Shown here one piece after another: positions 15,729 to 55,627 of a stretch of 64,000 nucleotides of DNA. The translations under genes were made by a program, and so were the position numbers. The notes under the pieces were generated by a model. The model worked only from the letters and a program-made list of their open reading frames with translations. It was not told the origin of the DNA and did not search any database. The stretch lies in the NCBI GenBank assembly GCA_904063045.1, contig CAJFCJ010000008.1:186001-250000 (forward strand), read 5' to 3'. This DNA comes from Dimorphilus gyrociliatus. Its lineage: Eukaryota > Animalia > Annelida. The stretch's first letter is position 1. Every line of letters begins with the position of its first letter.

Positions 15729-18346
15729 TTACCAAGCCCTTATACCATTCTGCATAGTACTCTGCATATAGGATGCATTCTGCGCTGTTTGAGCTGGTGG
15801 AACTGAATACCCTGTAGATGGCGCAAACATAAATGAACCATAGTGCGACGAATAGGGGTTGGATGGTGTAACGCAAGTTTTACCATCTCTAACAATCAAG
15901 GGAACGGCTACTCTTCTAGGCGATTGAATTGCTGATAATTCCAAAGTTCTATCTTGTTTTTGTCTCTTCATTTTATATCTTCTATTTAATGTGAAGAAAA
16001 AGAAAAGATATAGATAAAGTTATAAGTAAGTAAAAGTAATGAATATTTAATACTAATAATAGCACGCACATATATATAAACATATAGTTAGAGATCTAGA
16101 GATTTCAAAAATCTATTTTTTTTTTCAATAGATAAATATGTTTTCTTGAAAGTATATTTTTAGAGAAATTCTCTCAATGAATCACGATTCAACCCATAAA
16201 TTAAAGTTTGAGTGGTGACATTTGATACTTGAAGGTAATTTATTAAGAAAAAATTAGGTTTAAAATGATTACAAACCTATTTTGGAACCAGATCTTCACC
16301 TGAGTAGAAGTGAGTTTTAGAAGTCGAGCTAACTGATCTCTTTCGGGAGCACTCAAGTATTTCTGCTGTTTAAATCTCCTCTCCAATTCGAAAACTTGAG
16401 TTTGAGAGAATAAAACACGAGGTTTTCGTTTCGTCTTCTGTCTTAGAAGGTGGCATTCTTCGGGATCGATTTTGGTGACTGGATCAACAGAAGTCTTCTT
16501 TTTTACCATTGTTTGAGGTGATGAAGCTGGTAGAGGAAGATAATTCGTTTCGGGAGGTTTCTCCATGCCGCAAACTATAAATTAATTGCAATAAAACTAT
16601 CTTATCGATACATTTTTTCACATTTTTTGATATAATTTTTGTTAGATAACAAATTACTTGTTAACTAGTTCACTTTGTGAAAAAATTAAACTTGTTATCG
16701 TAATACAAGTACTTATTAAATATCTTTCTCGTTCTACTTATTCTATTTCCACTAATCCATTCAAGATTAAAAAAAGAGAATATATATATATATATTTAAT
16801 ATATTTAAGAAACCGCTAAGACTGTTTAAGTGTTAAGATATTGCGCAATTTTCATTTACAGGGTCAAAGAAAAATAGTCGCCCTTTAAATATTGATTTAA
16901 CGGGGCCTTGAAGGATCTTTTACCCAATTAGGCAAAGGTATCCTAGAGTGTAAGTAAACTAAAATGTCCACAAGACGGAAGATGTCTAGGTAGGCTTATT
17001 CCTGTTTTCTTTTCTTTTTTAAATATCTTATGTAGTTGGATAGAAACAATGAGACAAGAAATAAAATAAAATGCCCGGCTGGTTTCAGTTAAAATTGAAA
17101 TAAGAGGAAAATTAAGTATAGTTTGAGCTTAAAACTATATAGAATAAAATTTATTGGTTTTGAAAGATAGAAAGAATATGGATTTAAAGGGAGGGAGTTT
17201 GTTCTAGTTTTTATTTTTTACTTGTTTTCAAATTTGATGGTTGATGCGTGTGTGTGTGTGTGTATGTGTGTGTGTTTTCATTTTGCTTTGACCTCACTTT
17301 AAGAAAGTGATGAATAAATATATTACAAACATTATGTAATCTTATTAGACAGAGTATAAACATTCGACACTCTAAAGTGTCTTACTGGCTTGGACAAAGA
17401 ACAGAGTGGAGGAACTTTCAACGTTGTTGTTCTTCTCCTCCCTCCTCTTAATATACTATGATTAAGTACATCTACCTTTAACGAAAATGAAGAAAGAGAT
17501 AAGGAAAGAAAATAACAACTAAGAGAGAATAAAAATTAATTTAGGTCATCTGTATATCATTGATATACTAAAAATAATTGCAGACAATAAAAAAGCTTAA
17601 AAAAGAATGACGTTAATCTTATGCCAAGTAAAAATGCTTTGTCTTAGATATGATAAGATAAGCGAAATAAAAGGTTCTTTTATAAAATTCAAAATTTCAA
17701 GACTTCTTCCTCTAGTACACTCTTATATTTTTCTTATAAAAAAAGGAAGCTTTGCGGTGGTCCAAGTAGAATATTATTTGCTTTATTAATTGATCTAAAT
17801 AGATAAAAAAAAACAGCGAAAAAGAAAACATATATGAATATGTTTTGAAAGAAGATAGTGTAATTAGTTCGAAAATGGTGTTTAGTTGATCGTTTGTTGA
17901 TAGAATACTTTAAGAATGTTAAAATTTCTATTGATTGAAGAGAGGAAATGGATAGATAGATATAAATAAAGGAAAAGAATACAATATTAAAAATCTTTGC
18001 TATAATATGTATCAGTTATACATAAATATTGGATCTTATATATATAAATAAATGTAAAAGCGTAATATTAACCTTTATTGCCGATTGTTAAATCTTGACG
18101 ATAGCCGACGTTTTGAAGACCTGTTTCATAGTTGGTATGGGCATTTTGAAAGCCGTATGGTGGAGGTAGACAGCAATTCGATGGATATTGGTAGTCACAA
18201 GAACTTTGGTATGTTAAAGCTTCGTGCTGTCCGTTAAAATTCATAGCCTGATTCGGAATCTGGGGTCCGTTCTGCAAATTTTCAGTTGTCTGTAAATTTA
18301 AAATATTCCTCATCGAAAATCTGGAATCGTCGTGCATAAACTCCAT
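15729..18346 (-). CDS. NK4: NK4/tinman/Nkx2.5-class homeobox transcription factor, 274 aa
   Basis: Exons 18346-18073, 16574-16277 and 15981-15729 (phases 1 and 2). Contains the TN/eh1 motif FSMRNILNL; homeodomain [37 protein letters not shown] (the KPR/DQLA/TST signature of the Nkx2.5 class); NK2-[15 protein letters not shown]; and C-terminal GIRAW. Confidence 0.93.
17248..17274. repeat. (TG)n microsatellite in NK4 intron 1
   Basis: Read directly, one interruption. Confidence 0.9.
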
Positions 18347-20525
18347 TTATCTGTTATCATTATCCTTTAAGTGGTCTCTTGCTTATAATTGTAATTGACA
18401 GTCTCTTAGGTTATGGATATCTTGCGCGTAAGAGGCTAGCACTTGTACTAAAGTACTACCGATATACCTATAGGCCTATTCCAGAGTGGTTAGAGAATAT
18501 CTCATTAATAATTACAGACACTCTAACGGATGAAAGACAAAAACAAGACTATACTCAACCGTTCTCAACCGGAGGGATTCACTCTAAACGCCTAAAAAAA
18601 CTTCTCAACCAATCAACGATCAGGAAAAATCTCGCGCCTGCGCACTAGATAAAAACTCCTTAAATTTCATTTTAATGTATACGAATCGTATACTTATTAG
18701 CTGTTTAATAGTCTAATAAATCCTAAGTCAAAACTCAAACAAGTCGGCCGCTTCATAATACGAATAAATTAAACTTGTAAATCTATTTAAATTACTATCG
18801 TAAAAGGATGATTAATAATTAGCATTGGTTTTTTATTGCCGCTTCGGGCAATCGTTTTCTATACCGATCGTATCTTCCCTTTTTGATCAATTGTCACATT
18901 TAAATGGATATTCGATAGCTCGTTAGAAGAGTCTATATATTTCTTTTCTCTAGTTAAACTTATTTAACAAAATCATATTGCGATCTTTAGAGATCATTAA
19001 CTAGTAAGTTCTATCATTAACCACTCGAAATAAATAGAAATTTAGCTATCATTCATTAACTTTTAACAAGATGAAAGAAGGAGAAGAAGAGAGAATCAGG
19101 CTTATATTTTTTCTCAATCTCAAGTAGTTTATAAATTATTCATAAGCCGACCAAATTGAATATCTTAGTCTATGCTTACAAAGCTATTTGGACAAAATAT
19201 GGCCTATTTTACCTTATACTTAAGTTATTTAGAAATTGCCGAAAATGAGGATCTAATGGATTTTAAAAGGTTTTTTTCTGATTTGTACAACATTTAGAGA
19301 AATTAGTTAACCACGCCCTAATTTACATAGATTAATAGATTGAATACGACTAAAAAGACCACTAAAAGCACATCACAACCAAAGATTTTTTTTTTATTGA
19401 CCTTCAATTGGAAAAAAATTATAGTGATTACGGCCATTAGGGAGGTAAATATAAAAGGGAAAATAGAGTGATTGATTCACTCTCATTATTCACGGCTTTT
19501 AAGTATCTTAACAAGAACGGTTTTTCATTTATCTTCATTCTTTTTGTCTGCTGAATTTATTCTGCTTTTCCTTTAAAAGGATAATAACCTAAGCTTTAAT
19601 ATTACTTGTATAAAAATAATAAGTAACAAGACAGAAGAAACAGGTCTGCGCAAATTCAATGATTAAAGAAAGTGTTTATATTTTGATTATTTCCACCACT
19701 TTTCCCAAACTACAGTTCCTTCGATGGATCCGATAAGGAAATTCCCTCCTAATGGCCGCGGCACAACAAATCTTATCTCTACCGTTTGTAGATAACGCTA
19801 AGAGCATCTTCATATAGGCCTACGAACTAAAATACGGAGTACGTTTGTCAAGATCGACTCTCTTCGGATATTAATCACGCCTGACATCCTGTTGTCCTGC
19901 CCTTACGTCTGTTTATTGTAACTTTATCAATTAAGCATACATATCCTCATTTATATATCTCTAAGTCTATTGTTTGTAGCTCTCCAATTGTCTGGAAAGA
20001 TTGATGATAGTTTATGGTTACGCAATAAAATCTCTGTCAAAAAAAATTTTGGATGGAAAAAAATCCGTTGTTTGTGGCGAGCAAACAAAGCGGAGGTTAA
20101 ATACACCGAACCTCTTAAGTTTGTTTGTTCGACTTGTTGCCTTTTTAATGAGCTGAATAATTTTTCAATCCTTGTTTGAACTATTTTCTCAAATCGCTGT
20201 CTAAAAACACGTGATGATTTCGTTTATCTTTATCTTGTTTTTCTTTCTTGTTTTTGTTTTTTAAGATAAAATGATTGTTCTTTAGACAAATTTTCTCAAT
20301 TCACAAAAAGTCAATTAGTTTCTACCTTGAATAAGATATTTTAATAATTTATATAAATAAATTCAATTCCTAATTCATTTCTATACAATGAAAAAATGTA
20401 TACGGAACACTTCACTTATAAGATTAGAATGGTTTAAAAAAGAAATTTAAAACCTACCTTAAATGTTTGAAAAACCGATACACCAACGTCTAAGAAATGA
20501 AAAAGGGGTTAATTTAGGTCGAAGT

Positions 20526-20578
20526 CCAATTGACCAACCAATCAGCGTCGTGCCATAGTAAATATGAATTATGATTGG
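20526..20578. promoter_or_regulatory. CCAAT-box (NF-Y-like) cluster upstream of NK4
   Basis: CCAAT at 20526, CCAATCAGC at 20538 and reverse TGATTGGC at about 20572, within a locally CpG-richer patch. Confidence 0.4.
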
Positions 20579-23502
20579 CGGAGAAGGTTCACCGTACTGT
20601 CAGATCGATTAGGGAAAAGTAATGAAAATGGTAGGAAATAGACGATAGAGAACGAAAATAAGAATGATAAATGAGCGACGAATACTGCCATTGTTGCCTC
20701 TGGAGGCGATCATTCAGTCACTACTTAACACATATCATTCAGCGTGGTGCCATTCTCGGTATGGCGCACCCCAGGTGTGTCTTTTTACTTACTTTTTATC
20801 GCCTCTTTCCTTGTTTAGGCATTTTGCTTGTTTTCTAAACAGACAACCATGGGGTTTTATAATCACCCTAAGCGAAATTCTTATGATCTCTCAAGAAGAT
20901 CCATTAATAAAAATTGTTCATAAATTCTCTACATCCAATCTTTAAACATATTAATTGAAACTACTAAGTTATCTTTTACCCTAAAACCCTTCTATTTAAC
21001 AGTTAAGTATTTAATGGTTATATTCATAAAAAAGATAACAATTATGTCACATTTGTAAATGTCTTGTGTAAATAATAATAAAAATGATATTGATAATAAC
21101 ACTAAAAGTAAATCACAATATACGAAGAATAAAACTTTAAAACGTTTTTCAAGGACCTATGCCATTACTCTTTGCCTGGACAAGATTTAGCATCAGGCCT
21201 ATAAATCGTTTTTGATATGAAAACTAAACAAGCCATTTACAGTTTTAAATTACCATAAAGTAGAATTTTACAAATATTATGATAATGGGGAAGATAGGAT
21301 AAATTCTATATATTTTCAAAATAAATTGCCACCGTTTGGGTGGTCAATGGAGTGTATATTTATCATAAAGTTTTATCTATCAATATTGTTTTTCCTTATT
21401 TACACGCGTCTATTATGACGCTTTTTATCTCCTTTGACCTTCTAATGCTTGTGGGTTGGTGGTAAAATCGGTGGGGATAAGTGTCGAGCTCTTTGTTGAA
21501 TACTTGAATTATTTTGAAAGGTGCCTGATTTTTCGAGTGCTTCGGCTATAATTAACGACCTTTCCCTTTCGTTTATAACCTCTTTTTTAAGTGTGACTTT
21601 GTAAGCCATATAGTCCTTCAAAAGTGTTGTTTAGAACGTAGATTGTTTGTTATAGCAAATATATATATATATATATATAAGTAATTAATTTAACTAGTTA
21701 AGTAATACTGTACTTACGATATATATAGAAAACTCTTTGGAATACAGTTAAAAAAAAATCAAACTACGAATAACTTTTTATTTATTTAAAGTTAAAATGT
21801 TTATGTAATTAATAATTGTCAATGTAGGCTTAAAGATAGGAAATGTAAATCTGGCATTTAAAATTAATGAGAAGTTTGTGAAATGTTTCATACGGATGTC
21901 TTTTTTTTCTCTTAGTTGTTGTTTTTAACCATTTTATTTCAAATTTGAATTGGATTCTACATTTTCAGTATATATGTTAAATATTAATTTAATGACCTAA
22001 TTCTTAATTTATTCCATTATATTTTAATTGTAATAAATATTCTATTAAACTCTTTACAACTGATTTATTTACATTATTATTCTCTCTTACTTTTCTTATC
22101 TATTTGTTATTATCTATGTCAAGTTCTTGTTTTTGTACTTAACACGTTTATGTTTATATATTTATATATAAATTAATAATTAAAATAAAATCAAAATTCA
22201 ATAAATTAGTTGCTCTTCAATTTACGTGTGTTTTGTAAAGAGAAGCTAAATGTGCTGCCATCTAGAGTAGGTAGTGTAAAACGTAAGATTCCTGTAATGA
22301 TTATATAGCTTTGGGTACCGAAAAGAGCAGCTAATTGAATTTGATCTCCTTCTCTTTAATTGTCCTAGGATAATTTGTTATGCGAAGGATAAAGAACAAG
22401 AAACTAAATATAAATATATTTATAAATCAATTTTATGACTTTTGGATATATTAAATACTTAAGTTTAGAGGGAAAAATCCAGACATGACCTACATAAAGT
22501 TTGGCAGCTCAAGAGTTAAAAAATGAAAAAATGATTGTCCATTGAACTATTACACTCTATTATTAGAACTCATCAATTTTTTTGGGGTGGGTGATTTTGG
22601 CTTCAAAAGGCTAAACCCTTTGAATAATAATAAAGTGTTTGCTCATTCGGAATGCAGAATTTTTGTTTGTTTGTTGACAACATTGAATTGTAACAAAATA
22701 GAAAATGTCTTTACTATAGACTATTTTATTTAAGGACATAATAAAACTGATGCAAACTGGTATCCCCTATAGGTTTTCGAAGCAACAGTATAGAATGTGG
22801 AAATAAGTCACCAGAATAGGACTAAAGGGAAACTAACTCATCTATTGATTTGTATATTCAAAAAGATATATTTGAAACATTAGGATAAAAAATAACACAA
22901 GATAGTATTACGTATATCGCCTACTAAAATAATTTGGTCAATTTTTTGCCTAGTTTAGAAGGGGAAGAAGAATATTGTAGTGATTGTATTACGTTTCATT
23001 TCCTCTTTACTTCTATTCCTGATTACATTTATTGAATTTTCCGTGCAAAAAATAGCATGTAAATTTTATTTATTTGATCTATTAATATCTTATTCGAATT
23101 GAAAGATTTAGATATCTTCTCAATGTTTTTACTACTATAGATGGCGTTGGCAATTTAATAATGATAAGAGAAAAAGTTTTACTAAAATTGAAATGTTTGT
23201 TTTGACGAAAGTATTGACCTTGAAAATTGAAAATAATAATAAAAAATGGGTTAGAAATTGATAAAAAATTTTAAATCATTTGTAAATTTAAGTATTTTGT
23301 TATAATAAAAAAAAAATGGTTTTATCGGGCAAGAATGCGGAGTAAGTAAGCCTCAATTTCGTTCTACATTTTAGATAATTGACTTGAGTGCGTTGAGTGA
23401 CTTTAATAACGAAAATTATCAATAATTTTATAATATATTTAACAAATAGTTCTCTTTAATTTTCTTATATACTGCATATGAAATATATAAATATACAGTA
23501 TA

Positions 23503-23504
<2 letters not shown>

Positions 23505-23540
<36 letters not shown>
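23505..23540. repeat. (TA)18 microsatellite
   Basis: Read directly; preceded by TACAGTATAC. Confidence 0.95.
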
Positions 23541-23544
<4 letters not shown>

Positions 23545-24909
23545 CAGATTATACAACACGTATGTGCTAGAGCTGCAATTTTTTTCTTCTATACATAAAA
23601 CATAATTATATACATAGTATATGTTTAACAAATAATGCAGTAAATTTCCAAGAAGAGAATGTTTGTTTTTGTTCCAACAAAATGGCACACTGTTTTTCAG
23701 TGCAGTTTGGCATATATGAATGTGGTTTTAATATGGTTTTTTTTTGTTAGTTTTTGTTTTAAATAGTATTCAAAGGACGAATAAAATGATTCATAAATTC
23801 ATTCAATCAGTTATTTCTTTCTTTGTTTTGTTTTTGTTTTTGTTTTTTTTCAAAAAGGAAATAATAAAACGATTCTTTTTATTTCATATTTAATCATCTT
23901 TCCAAGTTTTGTGGTTCTTTTTTTGTTTTTAAATTTTTGAAATGAAACAGGCTGGAGGAGTTAGTTGAGAGATAAGCAGTAAAATTTAAACGTTTTGGAA
24001 TAGAGACAGCGTTTCATAATTAAAGCACCGTATCGAACACAACCAGTGATTTGATAATGACTTCATCCTGTATATTCATTTTTAAAAGTTAATTATATTA
24101 ATGTTACACAATATATAATAATTAATTACAGTAATTATACTTTATATTATGGATATATATTAATATATAGATATATTAATATAGATCTCTATATAGATAT
24201 ACTCTCTCTCTATATATATTGTATATAATCGACCGATATCGTTGAAATTTCTATTAAAAGTTCTTTTCAAATGCAAATTAATTAAGAATATAAATTTTGA
24301 AATTTTAAATACGAAATCCAAAAGCTAACTCTCTTTTACTAATAAAAAGTGCATAATAACATGCATTTATGCAAAAAGTAACAACTATGAGAGGGTAAAC
24401 CCTCTCCAAAGTTTGCTTTTTAGCATAAATGAAGCACTGCACAAAAAGAAAATAATTTACAAGAAAACTCTATCCATCCTCAAAATTATTTTAAGCCAGA
24501 GTATATGTTAGTTACGTAGAAGGTATAAACTTAACATATACATAGATATAGGAAAGATTAGACGCATCCACTGTTAGATTGATTGCTATTAGATAAATAA
24601 ACCATTGATTAGTAAATCTCCAGGAGAGTTGGATTTCAGTAGCAGCAAAATACACCTTATTATCTCTTTGTTGTTTTTATAGATTTTTTTATACATATTG
24701 ATTTTAAATGACCATATGAATTTGAAAATATGGAAAGTATCATATTTTTATGACAGATGCCATAAAAATGGCTAGTATTACAATATTTTGATATTTTAGA
24801 TATTGTACTTTTAGTTAGTTTCTTTTTTTTTAGTTTAAAAGTGTTAAAAAGAAAAGCATACACGAACCATGCAAATATCGGGAAGTTATAGGAAACACCA
24901 CCATCATCA

Positions 24910-25868
24910 TCATCCATTCATCACTGTGTCAAAAGCACAGAGTGATTGCATGATTGTCTTATCCTGAAACAAGCGATACATGCACAATAAAAGGAATTAA
25001 TCATAAATTTAGAAAAGTGGAAGAATCACCAAACGACGAAACGTGTCATTTATTCTTTCCTCGAATAAGTATTAGATTTCCCTCCCTCGCAAATATTTAC
25101 AAACCTTTTTACATGAGTCCATAAATTCTTCAACCGATATAACCCCATCCTTATTCTGATCCATTTTACTAAACACCGATTCAACGTGCTGCCTAGGAGT
25201 TGCATCGTTCTCTGCACTATAATGTCCCATCATATCATAGATAGAGCCGACAATGTCTAACATTTCCTCCTTTGTTATTATTCCATCCTTATTAACATCG
25301 TAGAGCTGGAAAGCCCACTGTAATTTTTCTTGCAAAGTTCCCCTTGCTAAAACTGACAATCCCATTACAAACTCTTCAAACGAGATTGTCCCATTGTGAT
25401 CTTGATCAAACGTATTGAACACGTAATGAGCGTACGTACTTGAATCTATAATAAACAAAGGGGAAATTTATTAAGAGCATGGTATTTTTGCTCAAAATTT
25501 CCTATCAAGTTATTTTCCCATTTTATTATTATTACTATTATTAACGCCATCTATCGACACGCTTTCATAGAGCTCTTTCTGCCTTTCATTGCAGATATCT
25601 TATAGAAAATCGAAAAACTCTATCGCTGTACAAACTAGCCTTGTCAAAAGCCTTGTCATAAATTATTATATATTAATGTTTGCGTGCTAAAACTAGGAAG
25701 TAAGGCAAGGTTAAACTAAGTTGAATATTATATTACTACTAATTAGCTTTAGGGATGATCAATGTTTCTTAATTATATTTTCAAAATGAAATTCATAGAT
25801 ATTTCACTATTAACAAAGAATAGCCGATAAAAGCATTCACCCTATGTAGAATACTTTCTCTTTCTTTC

Positions 25869-25900
<32 letters not shown>

Positions 25901-28143
25901 TTACAGCGACGTCAACCAAACTCACTAGAGCGTCTAAGAAGAATTTTTTCCTTCCTATTTCGTCTAATTAATAAGGGAGAAGAGAGAAAAAAGGAAAATT
26001 AAATAAGATGAGGAAGGGAGAAAAAGCTTGATAGAGTATTTTTTTATTTAAATATTTCTTGATAATTCATAAGATAGCCAAAAAAAAAGAAAAAGAAAAA
26101 AAGCTATAGATAAATAAATAAAGAAACAGTTTAGATACATTATTATAACAAAAGTAAGTATATGCGCTGCTTATTCTCAAGTAGTTATCTCATTGATCGT
26201 TGAGGATTTAAAGAGTCTATAAATTGCCACATAAGCAGTTTTTCTTTCTTTTTCTTTTTTTTTAAAACAGAATTATAAAAAATTTTAGATTTATCGATAA
26301 TTTAATAACTAGATTATACAAATAAACCATCTTAAAGCTTATTAAAGGTAACAATTTATTTTCTCTGGTACAATATCATCTCAATTCTCAATGGAATAAC
26401 TCTAATAAAGGAAAAAGAAATGAAAGGAATGTGTTATCATTTTTCCAAAGAAGAGAATATAAGAATAAAGAGAAAGATAGAGAGAAAGAGAAAGAGGAGA
26501 AAAAATAGATGAAAGAGAGAGGAATATTTCAAAAAAAAAGAGAGAAAAAAAAAAGAAGCTCTAATAATAAATAAATGAAAAAAAATATATGCATATAGTA
26601 GTGTACAGAGGATTTGTTTAGGTTGGGAAAAAACGGTAATTTTTAAGTAATTAACCAACCCGACAGCTGCAATCATCTCTGGGGTTGGGAGTAGAGTGGT
26701 ACAATGGGCTTTTCTACATGTGAAAAAGGCGATGTATTTACGGAGCTTTTCAGAAACAGAGCCACTGTTTTCTCATGTTTATATATAGATTGAACTATAA
26801 GGAATTTTATTCGCTCCTATCGTAATAACAATAGATGATATTAACATAATAAATTACATCTACACTGTGACTTTTATCTAGGGAATCTTCCTCTTTTTTT
26901 TTTCACAACTAATTGTACAAAACACCTAAATGATTCTTCTATAAACAATATATAAACTTATAAATATATATATAAATATATTTTAGATTATAAACTCACC
27001 TCCTTGAGGAAAGAATTGAGCATATATTTCTTTAAACGTCTCCTCATTTACAACACCAGCGGGACATTCCTGAAAAAAAGTAAAAAGAGTTAGGATTCAG
27101 TAGGAATAGATTACTATTGGGGATTTTTTGAGAATAATATATGATCTAAACCTAAAAATGTTGTTTTCAAACGTTAAAAAATATAGTAAGCATAAAAACA
27201 GACGCCAAAAGCCTTTAATTTCCCTTAACAGTCTGGTATAAAAACGTTAGAGAACTTTTATATCGAGGAGTGTTGGTAAATATTTAAAAAAAAGGGAAGG
27301 GAATACCATTTCTTTTCGTATAATTAACTATTATCCTGTTGGATTAGAACGTTTATTAGATTATTTTAAGAAAAACTTAGATAAAATTTTCTTTCTTCTC
27401 TTAATATGTAAATGCGTGCTAATGCGGGAATAGACACACTCATTTAATCAAATTAATCACGGAGGATGTCCGTGATGCAACTAGCTACTCTGCATCTCTT
27501 CAAGTTGACATTCTATATAGTCGACCGAGTAAAAAGTCACTGTCACTATTTTTAGTAATATTCATCAGGAACCAATAAAATACATCCTCCGGTTAGAAAA
27601 TTTTTACACTCTTCTCGATTCTTTATCCTTTTTTCTTTGCAGTTTCCTTTATCTCTTACCTTCGAAATATTTAAATATCAACTCTCTATTTACCTTTAGA
27701 TAAAAAACCGCATATTCCTCTTTTATTTAAGTTAATTATAGAGAATTTGTTTATCCGTTTTTCTTAATATTAATTAATGACCTTTTATAACATCTTCATC
27801 TCGTAAAGATCAGCAAAATTAATAAGTAGTAAGCTTATTAATGAAATACTATATTCTAGAATATGATTTATATATGGGAACATGTAAAAAGAGTTGGAAA
27901 GGGGAGATGGAAAATTGTTAAGCAGATGGATTGAGGAAAAGATAAAATTTTCAACTGAAATCTCTATGAATAGTAAAGTTTCTTTGAATAATTAAGACCT
28001 TCCCCGTAAATTTCTAACCTGTTTAAATCCTCTGTACATAATTTGTAGCTCCCTGCGAGAGAATTTCGTCGATTTGCATAGGGCGTCAAGCCCTTCCGGT
28101 TTATAACGTACGACTTGCAGTTCAAAGTCGTCGAGGTCATGAT
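24910..28143 (-). CDS. KCNIP: Kv channel-interacting protein (KChIP, neuronal calcium sensor family), common core exons
   Basis: Exons 28143-28019 (needs a phase-1 upstream exon), 27069-27000, 25445-25105 and 24963-24910. Translation reads [39 protein letters not shown], three EF-hand loops, then [17 protein letters not shown]. Confidence 0.93.
25871..25900. repeat. (ATT)10 microsatellite in KChIP intron
   Basis: Read directly. Confidence 0.95.
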
Positions 28144-42469: not shown

Positions 42470-45400
42470 CCGAATTTCTTTCTAAAGTGATCAATGAAAG
42501 GAAGACAAACGAGCCTCAAACGGACAATGCATCATTGTAGACTTTCAATCCTGACGCGTTTATATTTAATAAATTTATTCCTAAGGTTTTGATAAAAAAA
42601 AAAAGCACAAAATAATCTTTTTCAACAAGTTTCTCTTTAAACGAAAATAACGCCGCCGTCTATAAAGCTGAATGTGTAATAACATAGGACAAGTACAGCA
42701 AGTGGGGGGCGACACCTGTTGGTCGATTCTCTCAATGAATTTATGATGAAAGTCTATGCTGAATGTCAATTAAGCGCCATAGGCTATTTATTTTTAGCGG
42801 GAAAAAATATGAGACGAAAAACTGGTAAAAATAAATCAGAGTTACGGGTCATAACGCAGTCGTTTCAGGTCAGTTAGGCCTACACAATCTGCATTATTGC
42901 GGAGCGAACAGCGTGACGACGGCAATTTTTTGCGGTTCTTACAGCAATTTAAGCAATAAAGACAGGGAAAAAAGAATCTGAGAAGAGACAGGAAAAGGCG
43001 GCATCTGGCATTTTGTGGCTTGAGTGATTAGCAAGCAAGAAAGGAGCATCTTGTCCTTTTACATAATCTCTACGTTAGTTATTTATAACCTTTATATAGG
43101 CTTTCTATTCTCTTCTCTTCCGATTATGATTAGGATTTTGATATTGTATTGAATTTTAAAAAATTGTCTTTCCCACTTTTCTATTTTCAATTCTAATTTG
43201 CGAATTTCCAATTCTATTCTTTTCGGTGGTTAGATATTTATCGCTATGGACGAATGATTTTTAAACAGATGCAAAATTTCTCATTGATATAAGATAACTA
43301 TATACACCTCTGTCCAATTTTCCTCCTCTCCTTCTTTTTAACTGTTTTCAGCCTACTCCTTCCCTTTTCTTTCCTTCACAGTATCTTCAAGCAACAAGCC
43401 TATACTCTTTTCTTATACGTTAATAGCCGATGAAGTGTCAGATTTAATTACTAAACACTTTCTTTACAGATTACTTGATATTTGTGTTGGAATATTTGTT
43501 CAATGATTACTTAAGGTCGAAAATTTCGCTCCCTTTCTATGATATCTTAGTCGTGCTATTGGAGGAAATCGAGTTAAGGACTGCAGATAAGTTTTTTCAA
43601 TTTGAAAAATGAGATGAAGCAAAGCAATGAACCAAAGAAACTAGATACAATTTTTATCAGCTTGCATTAAAATGGAGGTAACAGTAAAGAAGTAATATAA
43701 AAGGAATGTAAAGTAACTTTTTAAAGAAAAAGGCAATGTGTATATATAAATAACAAATTAAGAAAAACTACCAAAATTTTAAGAAAACCTGATTTAATTT
43801 CGTCAACATCGAACACTAGCATCTTTTCATCTTGTATTCTCTAATTTTCAATTGAATATTTAATAATTTAATCAAACTAACTCCTGATAAGAATATTAGG
43901 TGAATTTAAAGGGGAAAAAGAGCATATAGTTTTAAAACATAGACTCTGCAAAGGGGACAAGAAAGTAAATTCTCTATGCTCACTGGTGGAATAGATAGTA
44001 ATGGCTAGGAATTGAAAAACAAAAAAGAAAAATTATCCGCTTCTCTTTAGTCATTTTGTCGGCATTGAGTTCAATTTCAAAGAAACTTAGTGAAAACTTA
44101 ATTAGCTTAAGTAAAAATAGACTGATGGGAAATGTTAATATTATTAAATTGCACACTTTAGATCTACTTTACAGCTTTTCTATTAAAGGATATTATTTTA
44201 AATAATTGTTAACATATCATATCATTTAGGAAAGGTCAAAGGACAACTTCAGAAGAAACGCCCCATGGATTAAACAGAAAAACAGCGGAAGTTTCAGTAA
44301 AAGGATGAAAAGAAAATCTGAAGCAAAGAAACAAAGGCGAGCTGGTGTGGAAGAGCAAAATTGGTAAAACTAAGAGACAATCGCAGCTCCTAGAGGCCTA
44401 CTCTCACAAGAGTTTCTGACGCCTAAATGCTCTCTCTGTTCTCCCTTTACTCTTACTTACATAAATAGACTTTTAAGAGGGGAAGGGAATCGGCTTTCTA
44501 TTCTCCGAAAACGGAGTGTATCGAACGTTTTTTTCCTTCTCTCTGGCTCTAATTACCTTCTCTTAAGCATTTACGACAAGGAAACTAAGTTAGCGGCTTG
44601 AAGCGGGAGCGAATTAACGAGGACACTGTAGTAGTCAACACGGAGAAATTCGCATGGGAACCGTGTAGTCAACGTCCTCATTTCCTCTCCTGTCGGTTCC
44701 ACAAAGCAGAAATCTTTTCTGCTTCACGTATCTGATAATGGCATCTTTTCATCAATTGGGCCGGCTGGTCAAGGAAAGGAAAGGTATATAGGAAAAGAGA
44801 AAGACAAGCGATTTTGCTTATACGATCGAAGCCTATCTTACACGACATTACTTCGAAAAGGAAATCCGTAGAAAGACATAAAGAAGTAGTAGTAGTAGTG
44901 GTAGTAGTACTAGAAGCCAACGTCTACAACAATCGATAAGGAATCCTCCGGAATTTTTAATTTTTGCCCATTTCTTATTGATCTATTTCTCCAGCTAATA
45001 ATTATACTTAGTAGAAAATAATGAGAAACAAATAATACTAAATATCCTTTTCGAATAGTAAAATCTCAACCACCAGGCTAAATATTGGAACAATTAGCCG
45101 GAAGAAAAGTGCGAAAGCTAGACTAGGTGAAACTGGAGAAAGAAACCTAATTATTTCCTTGAGATGTATTTTCCGAGTTTTTTCTCTTACTACCATCCAT
45201 TTATTCAGTTTTTTCTAGTGAAGCTCCCTCCTTCTAGGAAACCATTTGATATACCTCCCTCCGAAATTATTGAAATATAAGGTATATATGCAATATATAT
45301 CTAACAGTATGAGTATATTCTGACTCTCTATATATATACTTTTTACTGAAATAGTGTAAGATATATATATATATATATATATATATACAGTATATACACT

Positions 45401-48400
45401 AATATATATACTGTATATAGACTGTATAATATATTATTTTGTGTTTGATAACTGTTTTTTTTCACTCGGAATAGACTATTAATATTCCGGTTTAGCTTTA
45501 CAGTATTACAGTTTATTTGTCAGTATATTACCCGGTCACTATAATATTTCGCATGCGTCTGACGTGACACTTGTTTCTTTTGTCATGTCATCACTTGTAT
45601 GTTTTTACCTACTCGGTCCCATTTCAATTATGATTATTTCTTCTGTCATACTCATCTTTTACAAATTACCCAATAAATTCTAGATATAGTTTTCTTTCGT
45701 GAAAAACTAACTCTACGAAAAGAGAACACTCAGCTACCTTCTGAGTTTTCTATTTGAAATAAGTTAAAAAAGGTTCATTTACAAAAGTTTGATTTCTTCT
45801 GTTAGCCTTTTTTCCATTATAGTATTCTTACTTAAAAACAGCTAATCAGAAGACTTACAAATTGACGCCAACTACCACTATAAGAAAGAGAGAAGAAAAA
45901 GAGTAGCGCTATAGCGTTTAAAGGGTTCGTTTTAGACTTTAAAAAGTAATTCCCTATCATCCACTCTATTACCCTGGTAAAGAGACTTGTTTAAATTTAT
46001 ACCGTCTTATGGCAGATTAGAGATAAGTGTTTTAATACCTGAAAACAATTATTCTAACCTTATGAAGAAAACATGACTATATGTAAACATATCTGTGTAT
46101 TGGGAGATATTTACATTAGTCATCATTTTTTTATTTCTAATCGAAATATAGTAATTGGTTGCCTAATAATAGTATATAGCATATATAGCTATATTTACAT
46201 TGTTAGCATATATGTTATATAAATATAGAGTACATATACATATAGAGAAAGACACAGAGTGAGAGAGATAGAGAGAGAGAGAAACATAGAGAGAGAGAGA
46301 CATAGAGAGAGACAGAGAAAAAAAAAGAGAGGAAAAAAGGCAGAATATCATGTCTTTGTTGCAGTCGTTAAATTATGTATGCGTATATAAATTACGAAAC
46401 ATAAACGTAAATCTAATTAAGGTATATTTTCAAAATTAAAAATTACTTTTGTCAATTTTTTATGTAAATTACAAGAAATTTTTTTTCGATATTTCTAGAA
46501 GCCAAAAAAATATTACAACGTAGGCTGAAGTAACGCCTAATGAAAGAGCGTCTTGTTATAAAAAGAGATTTTCCCTGTTATTGGCACCTTGGGCAGATTT
46601 AGCGGATCGTATTATGAGATATTGACAAGAAGATTCATATGCTGCTAAAAGCCATCTAGTAATCATTGTACGTGGATTCTTTGATTACGTAGTGCATGAT
46701 TGCACAAAACGGATTGAGATATCTCATCGGAAGGAAAAACAAGGGGGAAAAAATGCCATTCAAACAAGTTGCATAATTCATTATGTTCCACTTATCATTG
46801 ATTTCTTTATAGCGGTCCTTAAAGATGGATCTAGTTAATTCTGAGACGGATCGTACATATGGGAATTGTCATATAAAACAATGTAAGAATGAAGGAAAGT
46901 GAAAGGAAAAAAAGTAAAATATACAGTAAAAAGAATCTACAATTTATCAGAATCTCCTCCTCTTCCTCTACTTCTTCTTCTTCAATTTAATTGATTTTTT
47001 TATTATAAATAACACGAATAAAAAAAATATTTGTAAAAATAGAGATATTTATAAATATTTACTCCAAATATTCACGTATATATATATACATCAATGTTTA
47101 GAGTAAATAAATCTAAAAATATATATTTATCCATACCCATTTACGACTCACTTTAAAGCGTATAATCTTTAACTTAAAAAAAAACTACTTGTCTAAACTA
47201 TATAGCCATAAAGAATAAAAATCCTTTAGAATTGATTTTTGCAGTGATAATTATAAATTATTCATAATAGAATAAGTTGCTAATAATAGTGTAGCTACCT
47301 ACTGTTTTGAAAATTCTTTCCTGAGTGAAATTCCTTTTTTTTTTGTCTAAAAAGAGAATATATTTATTTATATCCTTTACAAAACTGCTATTATCAAACT
47401 TGTATACTTCTTTTAGGTTAATTTTTGAACAGGATGTATATAAAAATAAACCTAACAGTTCTATTTTAATGTAGAATAGGAATTTTTACAATATACTAAT
47501 GATTAAGATCTCTATTACGTTTCTTTCTCCCCGTTTCGCTCTATTTTCCCTACTCTCTTTTAGAATGATTAACAGGGATAAAAAGATTTTTGCTAATTAA
47601 AATATATTACCAATAAATTGATGAATAACAGTTAAAAATTACGTTAACAGACTTTCCATATAAGAGTTTATTAATATACTCTAGCAGAAATTCAGATAAT
47701 GTGATTATAGGTGTTATATCTGTATAGTCTTTTGTAGCAAATGTAGAAAAGCTTGCTTTGTATCATGAAAAATTAAACTATGAAATGTTACATTAACTAA
47801 GTTACGGCTGAACATTAATGTACATGAAGAGACAAAAATGCAACAGGAAGCTGTTTCCCCCATGGCTGTTTGTCGACCTTCTCTAGTCGAGGCAGGTTTG
47901 TCACTGATTTTTAATGAGAGTCACTCTTTTTTTTTCATTCGAAATTTAATGAGGAAGAAAAACGTTTTAAACTAAACACATAAAATACTAGACAGAGAAC
48001 CAACGAAAGCACCGGATGAATACGTCATACTATCATTTCATCTTCTTTTATCCTATTCTGTAACGCTTAATCTCATCTCCTGTCAGTCATTGTACCCACC
48101 GAATATATCTTGCTTTATAAATTTTAGCCTTACCATCGCTCTTTTCAATATTTTAACTTGTCAAATGCAACAAGGAATTTATCATTTGTAAATGAGTTTA
48201 AAAGGCTTTTACTGCTTTCTTGTCGGAAGGGAGAGAAACAGTGGGTGTTGGAATATAAAAGATTGCCTCAAAAAAGATAGCAGAGAAGAGTGAAGATAAA
48301 AAAATAAGCAATGAAAAATATTTCATAAAGCAGCTGCGCAACAGACCCTAGTTTTTCTTTCCGATCAATTTATTCAGTTGGAGACTGCAAATTGTCAACA

Positions 48401-51578: not shown

Positions 51579-54500
51579 ATGTTTTCTATCTATATCTTAG
51601 TTTCTGTATTCATCTACTCAACTGCTTTTGAATTACAACGCAGCTTAAATAGCAGGTATCTAGGAAAAGAGCCCACTGGTTCAATACAAGTTAAACTTTT
51701 AGGAGGTAGCAAAACGTCCGGTAATATAATAATTCGGAGAGGAGCTCATTCTGCCTGGGGTGGCATATGTGATGATGGCTGGAGCAAGAATAACGGTGAC
51801 GTCATATGCAGAATGCTCGGTTTTGGAAAATGTATTGCCATAACTGTCAACAGCAAATTTGGCCATTTATCAAGTTACTCATAATTTTTTAATTGTATAC
51901 TAATATATTCTCTATTAACTCTTTTCTCAATAATATAACTATAGATAATAGAATTTGGTTAGACAACGTAAGATGTAACGGAAGTGAAGCATCGCTAGAG
52001 GATTGTCACCTATCTGCGTGGGGTTTGCATAATTGCGATCAAAAGGAAGTAGCCGGCGTTTATTGCGGACGTCAGAACGATTTTGCATTAAAGAAATCTG
52101 CTAAAACTTTTAAGGAATATGCTATTAGAATGAAAGGGGGACGAAATCCAACCGAGGGCCGCATTGAGGTCAATACTGGTTATTCTTGGGGTACAATCTG
52201 TGCCGATACGTGGACATTAATGGAAGCAATGGTTGCTTGCCGACAATTAGGTCTGAAATATGCCAGATCTCATACAACGGTATATATCAAGAGCTCATTA
52301 AACTATTTATCAAAATTAAACCTTAATTGTAATGAATTAGGTAAATTACAATCTCTCATCGAGCTATAATATTTCTCCTGTTTCAATAACTAGCAAGGTT
52401 CAAACTTCTTCGATTTAAAATAATATGGCTAAAGCTCTGAATTAGGCCTATCAAGAAGATTCATGACGCACCAGGGTCAAATTGATTTCTGCTTTCGGTT
52501 CCGCTTCAAAGTGCCAAAGGCAGTTAGGAAAGTAGCTACTATAATTTTGATATAGGCCCATCAAGCAGAAAAAGCGACCAGGGTCGTGCTTTGTTTTCTT
52601 TCCAGATTTTGTTTTCGTCCCTATAGTTTATCCTAATTTTGAGAGTATTTTCTTAATTTATCAGGTTAAATAAAGGAATTATGTAAGACGTCTGTTGCAT
52701 AAAGATATTAAGTCAATATGCCACTGAAAGTATGCAACTTAATTATATTATAAAGGACAACCTATATGGTACAGACAGTTGACCCAAATTTTTGACACCT
52801 GTAATTAAACATGGCTCTAGGAATAATAATTGAAATTGCTTAACAGGCACCTTACTTTGGGGGAAATAACGTCTCCAAGATAATATCAGGTCTACACTGC
52901 ACTGGGGAAGAATCAAACTTAGCTGAATGCCACCATGAAAACGTTGGTAAAGAAGTTAGTTGCAGGGACAGCAACTTAATTGCGGGAGTATTGTGTACGG
53001 AAAGTAGGTTCCACTTTCTCCAAATAGGTACCATAACTCTCAATATCTGCAATCGACAGGGTTACCTGATTTACAACCTAACGTAACCCTTCTAGAGGAG
53101 ACAATTTATTTGCAAGATAGACCCATGTTTCTAATGCAATGCGCTATGGAGGAAGGCTGTGCATCTTCGACAGCCTTTCACATTCAAAGAACTTATAGGG
53201 GTTTGCTCTTTAATTATTTTTAAGTAGCTCTAACATAAGAACAAAGATTAGCTATTGACAATATTGAAAATTTTCAAAGGCATGAATACAAGTTAATAGG
53301 AAACGGTAGTCGGAGAATTATTTCTATTTTCAGCCTATGGATTTCCAATATAGATTTAGACCTAATAAAACAGATTGGCAAATATACCGGAGGCGTTTAC
53401 TTCGTTTCTCCAGTGCAACCAAAAACGTCGGAACTGCGGATTTTCATCCTTTTCTGCATATGGACGATTGGGAGTGGCATTCGTGCCATATGCACTTTCA
53501 CAGTATGGAAGTGTTCGCTCACTATGATTTATTTGACAAAAATGGGAAGAGAGTTGCCGAGGGTCACAAAGCTAGCTTCTGCTTGGAGGACGTCCAATGC
53601 GATAGCGGAATAGCAAAACGTTATATCTGTCAGGGTTATTCACAACAAGGTTTGTTGTTTCTATTTCTTTATTCATAATTATCCTTCAATCTATCTTACT
53701 CGACGCCTAATGCATTAAGAATGATTTTTGGTTGACTCTGTCTCTCTCACTTCTCCTCTCCCTCTATCTGTCAGCAAGTTTTTAGTATAGACACAATTCT
53801 GGACTTTTAATTTGTAATCTTGTCTTTTCTCTCTTACTTTTACCGATATTTCCTCTTTTCTTCTAAATTAGCAATCACCGGTGCGTATCTATTTAAAAAA
53901 ATTCACTAGGGGGCTTTAACGCTTTTGTATATTTTTTTTTCGACTTTGCAGTTCTTCCCTTCAAGTAGAATTTCAGTTAAGAGGGAAATAAAACACTATA
54001 TAACATGGGATATCCTTCGTTTTTATTCCTATATTATTAAGTCTATTGAAAAGAATGCTATCAATACTTCGTTTTTTCTATTCCCGTTGATTAATTTTGT
54101 TATTATTTTGTAATTTATGCTATAGAAATTTAGGATATTGATAGTAACCAGAATTCACGAGATTTGTGAAAGTTTCTCCTAGACCTTAGGTGTTACTTCA
54201 TATTTCCTTACTTTTTATACATTCCGTCAATTACATCCGTACATTCGATAACCTTGAAGCTTGTATAATTAGCTGAGATTTTTAATCTAATTCCTTGCAC
54301 GAAAAACAAAAAGACGCGACTAAAATATGCTTGAAAACGTTATAGACACTTTTAACCCTTCCTCTCGTCTAATCAAGGCATGTTTTTAATTCCCGTTTCA
54401 CAAATTTTTTAAAGTATACCATATAATAAAATCTGTCAATTAAAAAAGCCAAAAATAGAATTTTACAATAGAACAAGTTCCTAAAGAAGATAAAAAAAAA

Positions 54501-55627
54501 TATAGCGTCTATTCTATCCGATATATCTTTCTTTATCAAAAAAGAAGTAAAAATAATTGAAACAGTAAATGAGAGTTATAGAAAAAAGGGTTTATCTTTT
54601 AGAAAAGTTTATAATATATAAAAGGAAATTTATAAAATGAACAGAAAGAGGAAGACAGAAAGAGAGAGAGACAGAGTGAGTGAGTGAGTGAGTGAGACAA
54701 TCACCAAACGAATTTTTATCTTGGAGAAGAAAATCCTATTTTAAGGCATTTTGGCAATAGATTGAGGAAAATTCCCTTATTCTGTGTGTATATATTTTGT
54801 ATTATTCTTTTAATGTTACTTCTCTAAATAGCTAGATCTTTCGATATAACATTCTAGAACGTTTAAATAAAAAGATTCTGTTCGTGACCGAGTACCTAAA
54901 CATTCTCTAAACTTATTTTTAGGTAAGAGGTTTCTAAGCAGACACATATAGAAATTTAAATAGAAACGTGTTATAAGAAGATGGTGAGAAAATGAATGGA
55001 TAAAAAGGATTCAACATTAGGTGGTATAGAGGGGAGGGTATAGGAAAACGTTTACTAGGGGTGTCAGGTTTGAAAAATTCATATATTCAGCGGAATGTCT
55101 TCAGCGCGAAATATTTCGCTTGTACTTTTATTTAAAGTCTAGACAAAAAAATTGTTAGTAAGAGAAACTGTGTTATTTCATCCACGTAGAGCATCTTTCA
55201 TGCAAGGTTAATTATAATACCAAAGGAAACATTTTAGAAAATAAAGCAGATACTTCTTCTTCTATAATAATAGACAAAAGATGTCTTGAACATTTGTACA
55301 AGGGCAGGAAACGTGTGTAATTTGTTTACTAATAAAGTATTTTGGGCGGAATATTAGGTATATTTTGGTTCTACTAGAGAGTTAAACTCTTCGTTTTCAC
55401 TTTTTCTAGGAATATCGGTTGGTTGTTCGGATATATACACCCACGAAATCGACTGCCAGTGGATCGACATGACCGAGGTGGAACCAGGCGATTATATCTT
55501 CCGCATGCAAGTCAACCCGGAACGGAAGATTGCTGAGTTAAGCTACGCAAACAATGCGGTTGTATGTAAAATGCGTTATGCTGGTGTTTCAGCTACCGTA
55601 ACCGACTGTAAATTGTGCTCTTTATAA
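51579..55627 (+). CDS. LOXL: Lysyl oxidase-like protein with two SRCR domains, about 473 aa
   Basis: Exons 51579-51873, 51945-52279, 52847-53003, 53060-53200, 53374-53649 and 55410-55627 (1422 nt). Has a signal peptide, two SRCR domains (WGGICDDGW; WGTICADTW), the copper site [13 protein letters not shown], the LTQ Lys in [10 protein letters not shown] and the LTQ Tyr in [14 protein letters not shown]. Confidence 0.93.

Follow-up and report, generated by a model that had tools for sequence, protein, structure and literature searches.

The genes encoding NK4, KChIP and LOXL are three neighbouring genes on contig CAJFCJ010000008.1 of the tiny marine worm Dimorphilus gyrociliatus, within the 64-kb stretch of DNA that was analysed as a whole (the window). 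NK4 is a homeobox gene of the heart type, KChIP encodes a partner of potassium channels and LOXL an enzyme that cross-links collagen. The explanation that we favour, and consider probable, is that this trio is what is left, after compaction, of an old neighbourhood on an ancient bilaterian linkage group. Ancestral linkage of the three families is supported at the scale of chromosomes and becomes thin at close range.

Gene order and gene density

The sequence-only reading that NK4, KChIP and LOXL are consecutive was borne out: the three genes proved real, the annotation places no further gene between them, and the limits that had been proposed are correct, with the NK4 stop codon ending at 15729 and the LOXL stop codon ending at 55627 (Table 1). 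KChIP and LOXL carry annotation numbers in succession (DgyrCDS6825 and DgyrCDS6826), and NK4 is the sole other gene called within 10 kb of KChIP. Because the spacer between KChIP and LOXL is transcribed and contains a spliced plus-strand RNA, the term consecutive is valid for protein-coding genes only. The further proposal that KChIP is a gene of ~25 kb filling the space up to LOXL had to be abandoned, since KChIP spans ~7 kb and the region at 31.1-51.6 kb is intergenic.

The 40 kb occupied by the trio hold 3 genes, versus 8.4 expected from the 208.9 genes per Mb of the Dimorphilus genome (PMC7854359). The gene-poor domain begins at NK4, with six genes located in 1-15.7 kb and three in 15.7-64 kb. 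No tRNA and no Rfam family was found in the window, no homeobox gene besides NK4 is present within 16 kb on one side and 46 kb on the other, and Lbx, Tlx, NK3, Slit, Dok, Fgf and Npm genes are absent from the window. Its other genes encode an LRR-FN3 protein, a receptor guanylyl cyclase and an orphan GPCR, none of which maps to the vertebrate paralogon described below.

Table 1. Features of the NK4-KChIP-LOXL region (positions in the window)
Feature	Position	Strand	Evidence or content
NK4-type homeobox gene	15729-18346	minus	274 residues annotated
NK4 exon 3	15729-15981	minus	homeodomain end (RYKMKRQ...), NK2-specific domain, C-terminal GIRAW motif, stop codon
NK4 exon 2	16277-16574	minus	homeodomain residues 1-52; Pfam Homeodomain, E 5.7e-18
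NK4 exon 1	18073-18346	minus	start codon, TN-like motif (FSMRNILNL); ORF translation, splice solution
Spacer, NK4 5' end to KChIP 3' end	18347-24019		5.7 kb; no gene called
KChIP gene	about 24020-31078	minus	~7 kb
KChIP alternative last exon 5b (DEVIIKSLVVFDTVL, stop)	24020-24067	minus	tblastn, mollusc and annelid KChIPs
KChIP last exon 5a, with stop	24910-24963	minus	used in public model DgyrCDS6825
KChIP exon 4	25105-25446	minus	EF-hands 2-4; Pfam EF-hand families
Conserved non-coding block, KChIP intron 3	25591-25786		87-92% identity to related dinophilid
KChIP exon 3	27001-27069	minus	tblastn; outside public model
Conserved non-coding block, KChIP intron 2	27380-27625		86-90% identity to related dinophilid
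KChIP exon 2	28019-28143	minus	tblastn; outside public model
Conserved non-coding block, KChIP intron 1	28157-28400		94-98% identity to related dinophilid
KChIP exon 1, coding part (MFALSRRMSRKFSRR...)	31000-31078	minus	outside public model
Conserved, transcribed non-coding cluster, KChIP-LOXL spacer	41225-43144		G+C islands
Unannotated spliced transcript	46167-46859	plus	read joint 46419>46497 (one run); splice sites in sequence
LOXL gene, DgyrCDS6826, 473 aa	51579-55627	plus	SRCR-SRCR-lysyl-oxidase, LOXL2/3/4 type
LOXL six exons	about 51579-51872, 51953-52289, 52847-53002, 53059-53199, 53373-53651, 55407-55627	plus

Identity of the three genes

The three NK4 exons represent the unique GT/AG combination yielding 274 residues, and the homeodomain is interrupted by a 295-bp intron at QNR|RYK. 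Among solved structures NKX2-5 was the best match (92.5 bits), compared with 79.5 for NKX2-1 and 74.5 for vnd. The named top matches of the word search were Nkx2-5, Nkx2-6, Nkx2-3 or tinman, with the exception of one Scylla isoform auto-labelled 'thyroid transcription factor 1-like', the sister isoform of which is labelled Nkx-2.3-like. The spacer between NK4 and KChIP, which is presumed to hold the NK4 promoter and upstream region, displayed G+C islands at 19.6-20.0 and 20.5-20.9 kb in a composition scan.

KChIP scored 155-173 bits against KChIP1-4 and at most 119 bits against NCS-1, hippocalcin and recoverin, with exon 4 giving 173 bits for KChIP4 and 119 bits for NCS-1. Exon 3 is 85-88% identical to KChIPs from molluscs, annelids and a hemichordate by tblastn. 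Exon 1 resembles the N-terminus of Paralvinella KChIP with a weak tblastn match (E 0.068); its phase-1 donor joins exon 2, where acceptor and phase fit, to give D-HDLDD. The transcript ends in one of two last exons, either exon 5a, which is 95-96% identical in a related dinophilid, or exon 5b, for which an AG acceptor and the reading frame fit. The KChIP introns measure 0.9-2.9 kb and exceed the genome median (66 bp; PMC7854359) by a factor of 14-43. The LOXL protein begins with a signal-peptide-like stretch and contains a pair of SRCR domains together with a complete Lysyl_oxidase domain.

Judged by these similarities, the assignment of the three genes as counterparts of NKX2-3/2-5/2-6, KCNIP1-4 and LOXL2-4, as originally suggested, holds for each of them, and they would be the single-copy annelid representatives of these vertebrate families.

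Conserved and transcribed non-coding sequence

The pairwise profile of 24300-28950 against the related dinophilid showed three blocks, one in each of KChIP introns 1 to 3, rising above a background identity of 40-60%. The 20 kb between KChIP and LOXL are intergenic, transcribed and partly conserved; pieces of the cluster at 41225-43144 are matched by a relative's contigs at 91-97%, with indels that break the frame. The spliced transcript at 46167-46859, whose 77-nt GT..AG intron lies at about 46422-46498, represents a lncRNA or else a distal 5' exon of LOXL. A comparison of the window with the loci of Lamellibrachia, Capitella, Owenia and Glandiceps found no similarity outside coding sequence, and NK2-type sites (TYAAGTG) were not enriched (14 seen versus 19 expected, 0 in KChIP introns).

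Linkage in other animals

In Lamellibrachia satsuma NK4 (668,777-669,127) and KChIP (354,063-373,011) are located on the same scaffold, JAHXPS010000244.1, with a gap of 296 kb. The two genes are in tandem in Dimorphilus and head to head in Lamellibrachia, which indicates at least one inversion. In the bivalve Sinanodonta woodiana NK4 and KChIP are on one chromosome, with NK4 at 9.81 Mb of CM100991.1 and KChIP on a contig of equal size (140,592,063 bp). A single 42,360,788-bp chromosome of the scallop Pecten maximus bears both KChIP and LOXL, and in the hemichordate Glandiceps talaboti LOXL (at 17.6 Mb) and KChIP share a chromosome of 24,251,578 bp. By a rough estimate, with ~19-23 chromosomes per genome, these three same-chromosome cases and one same-scaffold case are far above chance. 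Numbering gaps of ~560 (Pecten) and ~420 (Glandiceps) RefSeq accessions and of ~1,390 locus tags (Sinanodonta) weakly suggest that hundreds of genes, and megabase distances, separate the genes in these three species.

Neither NK4 nor KChIP was found within 10 kb of LOXL in Capitella and Owenia, the genes are on different scaffolds in Helobdella and Paralvinella, and for no annelid other than Dimorphilus could a position of LOXL close to NK4 or KChIP be established. The NK4-like gene and KChIP of the crab Scylla are on separate chromosomes, and Daphnia NK4 has unrelated neighbours. Of the proposal that the trio forms a bilaterian-ancestral block, ancient linkage is supported, on the evidence of Lamellibrachia, Sinanodonta, Pecten and Glandiceps, and a tight microsyntenic block did not emerge from the comparison, given Capitella and Owenia LOXL, the differing annelid orientation, the large distances suggested for the scallop, the mussel and the hemichordate, the separate chromosomes in Scylla and the other neighbours of Daphnia NK4.

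Origin of the adjacency

It is conceivable, though in our judgement rather doubtful, that the families share an ancestral linkage group only, that gene order on it has been scrambled, and that the adjacency in Dimorphilus is a coincidence noticed by way of the human map. Linkage seen at no more than the same-chromosome level in mollusc and hemichordate genomes, with numbering gaps suggestive of large distances, the lack of any LOXL linkage found in other annelids and the off-paralogon position of the remaining window genes are in line with such a coincidence, as is the fact that the pattern was chosen after being seen. However, NK4 and KChIP are within 296 kb of each other in Lamellibrachia, an annelid that is only distantly related and has a much larger genome, three to four vertebrate paralogons independently retain Kcnip and/or Loxl 0.02-3 Mb from NK, Lbx and Tlx genes (PMC2446394), and the probability that both near neighbours of NK4 would belong to the paralogon set by chance is roughly estimated at about 1-5%.

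Alternatively, the region might be a genomic regulatory block with NK4 enhancers in the introns of KChIP or on its far side toward LOXL, so that any break in gene order would sever these enhancers from NK4 and selection would keep the trio together, an explanation that we regard as unlikely. The start of the gene-poor domain at NK4, the long KChIP introns with their conserved blocks and the conserved pieces at 41.2-43.1 kb would fit it, and introns with open chromatin are unusually long in Dimorphilus (PMC7854359). These data are only compatible with KChIP as a bystander hosting putative NK4 enhancers, as the sequence-only reading had suggested, and a role of shared enhancers in holding the trio together is hypothetical. 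The conserved blocks could equally serve LOXL or KChIP itself, which is neuronal and in other animals has numerous promoters and isoforms; in vertebrates the KCNIP and NKX2 genes have many others between them, and KChIP is not kept beside NK4; the Lamellibrachia pair is far apart and inverted; and neither the cross-species comparison of non-coding sequence nor the count of TYAAGTG sites favours such enhancers.

Under the explanation as a compacted remnant, the ancient bilaterian linkage group would have become the human 4/5/8/10 (plus 2p) NK paralogon, and the side-by-side order in Dimorphilus is most likely the leftover of a neighbourhood that was smaller than 1 megabase already in annelids, and probably in the pre-duplication chordate too. 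The domain in which the trio now resides is 40 kb long, poor in genes but rich in conserved non-coding sequence, and starts exactly at NK4. We infer that the genes have been close since ancestral times and were not brought together anew.

Comparison with known systems

The insect NK homeobox cluster consists of tinman-bagpipe-ladybird-C15-slouch. NK4 is a core member of the NK cluster, but in Dimorphilus it has, at least locally, become separated from it. In oysters the cluster is dispersed along one chromosome (PMC7566022).

Dimorphilus retains macrosynteny and bilaterian ancestral linkage groups (Martin-Duran et al. 2020, PMC7854359), and conserved linkage groups predict that the three families share a chromosome, as they do in genomes of annelids, molluscs, a hemichordate and vertebrates, whereas the immediate adjacency and the 296-kb distance in Lamellibrachia are not predicted by macrosynteny. 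The region also recalls the ancient microsyntenic pairs of metazoans and genomic regulatory blocks (Irimia et al. 2012, Genome Res 22:2356, PMC3514665; Touceda-Suarez et al. 2020, PMC7530604), in that the gene of a developmental transcription factor has 'bystander' genes unrelated to it as neighbours, where genes are sparse and conserved non-coding sequence is abundant. Unlike those cases, immediate adjacency of the trio is seen in Dimorphilus only and the enhancer-target role is putative; the main texts of both papers make no mention of Nkx2, Kcnip or Loxl.

The vertebrate half of the linkage is already published: Kcnip and Loxl are "signature genes" of the vertebrate Lbx/Tlx/NK paralogons, together with Slit, Dok, Fgf-Npm and Btrc, and in three to four of these paralogons they are found on the flanks of NK, Lbx and Tlx genes (Wotton et al. 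2008, BMC Evol Biol 8:171, PMC2446394). The human map positions quoted in the sequence-only reading (NKX2-5/KCNIP1 at 5q35; NKX2-3/LOXL4/KCNIP2 at 10q24; NKX2-6/LOXL2 at 8p21; LOXL3/TLX2/LBX2 at 2p13) agree with that study, in which one Xenopus scaffold carries Loxl2-Nkx3.1-Nkx2.6-Prom2-Kcnip3 and the non-NK genes were proposed to have joined prior to the two genome duplications or in their course. The same families are thus linked in Nkx2.3-Loxl4-Kcnip2, Nkx2.5-Kcnip1 and Nkx2.6-Loxl2 (with Kcnip3 in frog and fish), and LOXL3 adjoins TLX2 and LBX2. Since the same three families are near one another in vertebrates, the linkage is probably ancient. Unlike the work on vertebrate paralogons only, the present analysis concerns a protostome in which the three families are immediate neighbours.

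Identity of the NK4, KChIP and LOXL genes

The reading frame and length of the NK4 gene were settled by trying splice-site combinations computationally. Among solved structures, its homeodomain matched NKX2-5 (92.5 bits) better than NKX2-1 (79.5), vnd (74.5) and NKX3-1 (62.7). The named proteins among the best 120 matches of the NK4 word search were Nkx2-5, Nkx2-6, Nkx2-3 or tinman, with the one exception of a Scylla isoform automatically labelled 'thyroid transcription factor 1-like', the sister isoform of which is labelled Nkx-2.3-like. The homeodomain is of the NK2 class, with Tyr54, and its QNRRYK motif crosses the joint of exons 2 and 3; QNHRYK is the form in NK2.1 and NK2.2. Translation of the open reading frame also identified a TN-like motif (FSMRNILNL) in exon 1, and an NK2-specific domain and a C-terminal NGIRAW in exon 3, the GIRAW end of which can be compared with the HGIRAW C-terminus of Octopus Nkx2-5. 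Judged from its sequence, the gene is a well-supported candidate orthologue of NK4 (tinman and Nkx2-3, 2-5 and 2-6). The homeobox is split by a 295-bp intron (15982-16276) between QNR and RYK, and the same stretch is uninterrupted, in one exon, at the NK4 locus of Lamellibrachia (L002, 10001-10351).

The KChIP exon in the window matches DgyrCDS6825 (contig CAJFCJ010000008.1, 1.6 Mb) at 100% identity, window positions being those of the contig record minus 185,997. The public model, of 104 amino acids, is truncated and does not include three upstream coding exons. Exons 2 and 3 displayed 67-90% identity to mollusc, annelid and hemichordate KChIPs in tblastn searches, and exon 1 (MFALSRR...), which has no MG myristoylation start, is similar to the Paralvinella KChIP. 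The alternative last exons both code for a C-terminal helix with the motif D..I..SL..FDTV. The EF-hand core scored 173 bits with KChIP4, 166 with KChIP2, 156 with KChIP1 and 154 with KChIP3, as against 119 with NCS-1, 111 with hippocalcin and 76 with recoverin among the other neuronal calcium sensors, and every named homologue was a KChIP or calsenilin. Ahead of the first EF-hand there is a region of the KChIP type, and the N-terminal exon is of the variable kind. These features place the gene in the KChIP (KCNIP1-4) subfamily. In Pinctada imbricata, five KChIP-like genes (P0025, P0033, P0041, P0042 and P0054) are located on one 71,201,966-bp chromosome, which suggests a lineage-specific KChIP expansion in this pearl oyster.

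The LOXL protein contains two SRCR domains (E 1.7e-44) and a complete Lysyl_oxidase domain (positions 1-204 of 204, E 3.8e-92). The copper-binding His motif and the Lys and Tyr of the LTQ cofactor pair align with those of LOXL2, the residue roles being those in LOXL2. A tree built from 37 catalytic domains placed the protein among SRCR-bearing protostome enzymes (clade support 92/90), the vertebrate LOXL2/3/4 enzymes formed one clade (96/97), and an SRCR-less LOX/L1/L5 clade was split off (100/100), a placement that agrees with the report that LOXL2/L3/L4 is the sole lysyl oxidase type in protostomes (PMC4448552). The Dimorphilus gene is of the LOXL2/L3/L4 type, although it has only two SRCR domains and vertebrate LOXL2/3/4 have four. 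On a 1,028,496-bp contig of Paralvinella palmiformis, there are three LOXL genes (P0361, P0364 and P0439) with neighbouring locus tags (05013, 05015 and 05019), two of which are identical in their catalytic domains, an arrangement suggestive of a recent tandem triplication.

The sequence-only reading had treated KChIP and LOXL as orthologues of their vertebrate counterparts, and it stands in this respect because of the scores, the domains and the LOXL tree, the orthology of NK4 being well supported by sequence scores.

Features of the NK4-KChIP-LOXL region (window positions)
Feature	Positions	Strand	Basis or remark
NK4 exons 1-3	18346-18073, 16574-16277, 15981-15729	minus	sole GT/AG combination matching the public model's 274 residues
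KChIP added upstream coding exons	31078-31000, 28143-28019, 27069-27001	minus	tblastn with mollusc, annelid and hemichordate KChIPs
KChIP alternative last exons	24963-24910, 24067-24020	minus	second one new by tblastn
KChIP intronic conserved block	28157-28400		94-98% vs related dinophilid
KChIP intronic conserved block	27380-27625		86-90% vs related dinophilid
KChIP intronic conserved block	27744-27842		87% vs related dinophilid
KChIP intronic conserved block	25591-25786		87-92% vs related dinophilid
LOXL (DgyrCDS6826)	51579-55627	plus	473 residues, hydrophobic N-terminal start

Adjacency and local architecture

KChIP and LOXL have consecutive CDS numbers, and apart from NK4 no gene is called in the 10 kb around KChIP, which bears out the proposal that the three genes are consecutive. 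No Rfam families or tRNAs were present in a search across the window. The proposal that KChIP is a long gene reaching towards LOXL had to be given up: the gene covers just ~24.0-31.1 kb, with introns of ~2.9, 0.9 and 1.6 kb, and 20.5 kb of intergenic DNA separates its first coding exon from LOXL. A KChIP gene spanning 24-51 kb was rejected, as coding exon 1 was placed at 31.0 kb and the sole spliced RNA observed farther out is on the opposite strand.

The first 15.7 kb of the window contain six genes with spacers of 0.3-1.5 kb, and the 48 kb that start with NK4 contain three, so that gene density shifts sharply exactly at NK4. Neither an ORF nor a G+C island was found in 55.7-64 kb. The Dimorphilus genome has on average 208.9 genes per Mb and a median intron of 66 bp (PMC7854359); at this density, the expectation for the 40 kb considered here is ~8.4 genes. 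The genes before NK4 include those encoding an LRR-FN3 membrane protein, a receptor guanylyl cyclase, two ITIH-like proteins and an orphan GPCR; the last was considered as an alpha-2-adrenergic-type member of the paralogon, and this was rejected because it is a divergent orphan receptor of the rhodopsin family. An assembly artefact was judged unlikely, given the 1.6-Mb contig, the collinear contig of a relative over 24.3-28.5 kb and identical public contigs over 41.8-46.9 kb.

Transcription and non-coding conservation

Public contigs identical to the window (run X5) cover much of 41.8-46.9 kb in the spacer between KChIP and LOXL, and the uneven depth and a splice indicate that this run is probably RNA of D. 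gyrociliatus. The unannotated spacer RNA on the plus strand (46167-46859, or more widely 41760-46859) has a 77-nt GT..AG intron near 46.42-46.50 kb, is on the same strand as LOXL and lacks a convincing ORF. A lncRNA and a distal 5' exon of LOXL are both possible identities for it.

Contigs of a related dinophilid (L007-L011; Logan SRR23372216/228/229/231/232, from the SRR233722xx series), which are unspliced and up to 5 kb long, were collinear with 24.35-28.48 kb at 76-78% identity overall. Across the KChIP gene, nucleotide identity is ~77%, and protein identity in exon 4 is 92%; these contigs are useful for phylogenetic footprinting of the Dimorphilus genome. In a sliding identity profile, exons reached ~90% or more over a background of 40-60%, and four intronic blocks of KChIP were conserved. 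In the spacer, five pieces within 41225-43144 (~1.45 kb) were 91-97% identical to coral-tank metatranscriptome contigs of a relative, which may or may not be the dinophilid of the SRR233722xx contigs. These matches have frame-breaking indels of 1-3 bases and therefore represent non-coding conservation; two G+C islands (41.5-42.0 and 42.7-43.1 kb) fall in the same place. The array of conserved non-coding blocks thus spans KChIP and the spacer, in a comparison with a related dinophilid over a short evolutionary distance. No deep non-coding conservation emerged when the window was compared with the loci of Lamellibrachia, Capitella, Owenia, Sinanodonta, Glandiceps and Daphnia, all matches being to exons or A+T-rich noise, and a search for enrichment of NK2-binding sites found none.

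Linkage in other invertebrates

NK4 and KChIP were searched exon by exon, and the database entries P0005 (DgyrCDS6825) and P0367 (DgyrCDS6826) were the full-length proteins used. Because the word search was confined to 0.55-1.75 times the query length and the queries were exon-wise, the NK4 and KChIP matches were short isoforms or partial models, from species that seldom overlapped. Naming 20 LOXL cluster representatives led to Pecten and Glandiceps, and listing the KChIP and NK4 clusters led to the KChIPs of Pecten and Scylla and the longest Glandiceps isoform.

In the annelid Lamellibrachia satsuma, NK4 (668.8 kb) and KChIP (354.1-373.0 kb) are located head to head, 296 kb apart, on one 864.6-kb scaffold; no Lamellibrachia LOXL was among the 20 named cluster representatives. 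In the bivalve Sinanodonta woodiana, the chromosome that has NK4 at 9.81 Mb is 140.6 Mb long, exactly the length of the contig on which KChIP is found, and in the scallop Pecten maximus, a 42,360,788-bp chromosome carries both KChIP and LOXL. In the hemichordate Glandiceps talaboti, LOXL lies at 17.6 Mb of a 24,251,578-bp chromosome that also carries KChIP. The KChIP gene spans 213 kb in Sinanodonta and 151 kb in Glandiceps. If numbering follows position, gaps in accessions and locus tags hint at a separation of the linked genes by hundreds of others in Pecten, Glandiceps and Sinanodonta.

The proposed ancestral linkage is supported by these four species but not by the crab Scylla, in which an NK4-like gene and KChIP are on separate chromosomes. 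KChIP and LOXL are on separate scaffolds in Helobdella and Paralvinella, as are NK4 and LOXL on separate contigs in Nucella. For the further proposal of a tight block the picture is mixed: NK4 and KChIP are 296 kb apart in Lamellibrachia, and in Capitella and Owenia LOXL has neither KChIP nor NK4 within 10 kb. No hidden neighbors from the trio were detected by tblastn in the retrieved loci, and the neighbors of Daphnia NK4 within 10 kb were glycosyltransferase, Reeler and Fasciclin genes, with no trio partner. The 'NK4' model of Daphnia pulex (GL732529.1; locus L013, 10001-19758) has two homeodomains over 9.7 kb and probably represents two tandem NK2-class genes merged by annotation.

Discussion

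The linkage of the three families in vertebrate NK paralogons, which the sequence-only reading cited, is already published: Kcnip, Loxl, Slit, Dok, Fgf-Npm and Btrc are hallmarks of the vertebrate Lbx/Tlx/NK paralogons (Wotton et al. 2008, PMC2446394). LBX1/TLX1 are flanked by LOXL4 and KCNIP2, with NKX2.3 at 1.7 Mb; KCNIP1 adjoins TLX3, with NKX2.5 further along; LOXL2 occurs together with NKX2.6 and NKX3.1, and LOXL3 with LBX2 and TLX2; and a single Xenopus scaffold carries Loxl2-Nkx3.1-Nkx2.6-Prom2-Kcnip3 (PMC2446394). Our literature search found no paper carrying this linkage over to protostomes. The Dimorphilus genome paper (PMC7854359) does not mention NK4, KChIP or LOXL, nor do the main texts of two microsynteny studies (Irimia 2012 and Touceda-Suarez 2020) mention the trio genes, and the Robert 2022 and Schmidbaur 2022 supplements gave no match for them.

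Linkage of the three families at the level of the chromosome is well supported across Bilateria, as would be expected from conserved ancestral linkage groups. Close linkage of NK4 and KChIP is supported within annelids and, independently, in vertebrates, and close linkage that includes LOXL was found in Dimorphilus and vertebrates alone. The trio is probably a compacted remnant of an old neighborhood. Chance adjacency inside a conserved chromosome would also place the three genes side by side, and we consider it rather unlikely. A constrained regulatory block, in which NK4 enhancers lie in a bystander KChIP gene, would be consistent with the existence of conserved non-coding blocks, but these may serve KChIP or LOXL instead and are not shared with Lamellibrachia, NK2-type sites are not enriched, and KChIP is not directly beside NK4 in vertebrates or Lamellibrachia. 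We consider such a block improbable. The fullest version of this idea, that the block dates from the bilaterian ancestor, that NK4 enhancers in and beyond KChIP held the families close for >550 million years, and that it was split among the NKX2-3, NKX2-5 and NKX2-6 paralogons after the vertebrate genome duplications, appears very improbable.

The Dimorphilus locus is small (~40 kb, with few conserved blocks) and is therefore practical for addressing whether neighborhoods of this age last because of shared regulation or because of slow rearrangement. The trio is a useful example for comparative genomics, of a kind already known. According to Wotton et al. (2008), the non-homeobox genes joined these loci around the time of the vertebrate genome duplications, either during them or shortly before (PMC2446394). 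The presence of two signature families beside an annelid NK4 gene, together with their linkage to one another or to NK4 in another annelid, a hemichordate and two bivalves, would move the origin of the neighborhood back to the protostome-deuterostome ancestor, and this would alter the picture of late acquisition around the vertebrate NK, Lbx and Tlx loci.
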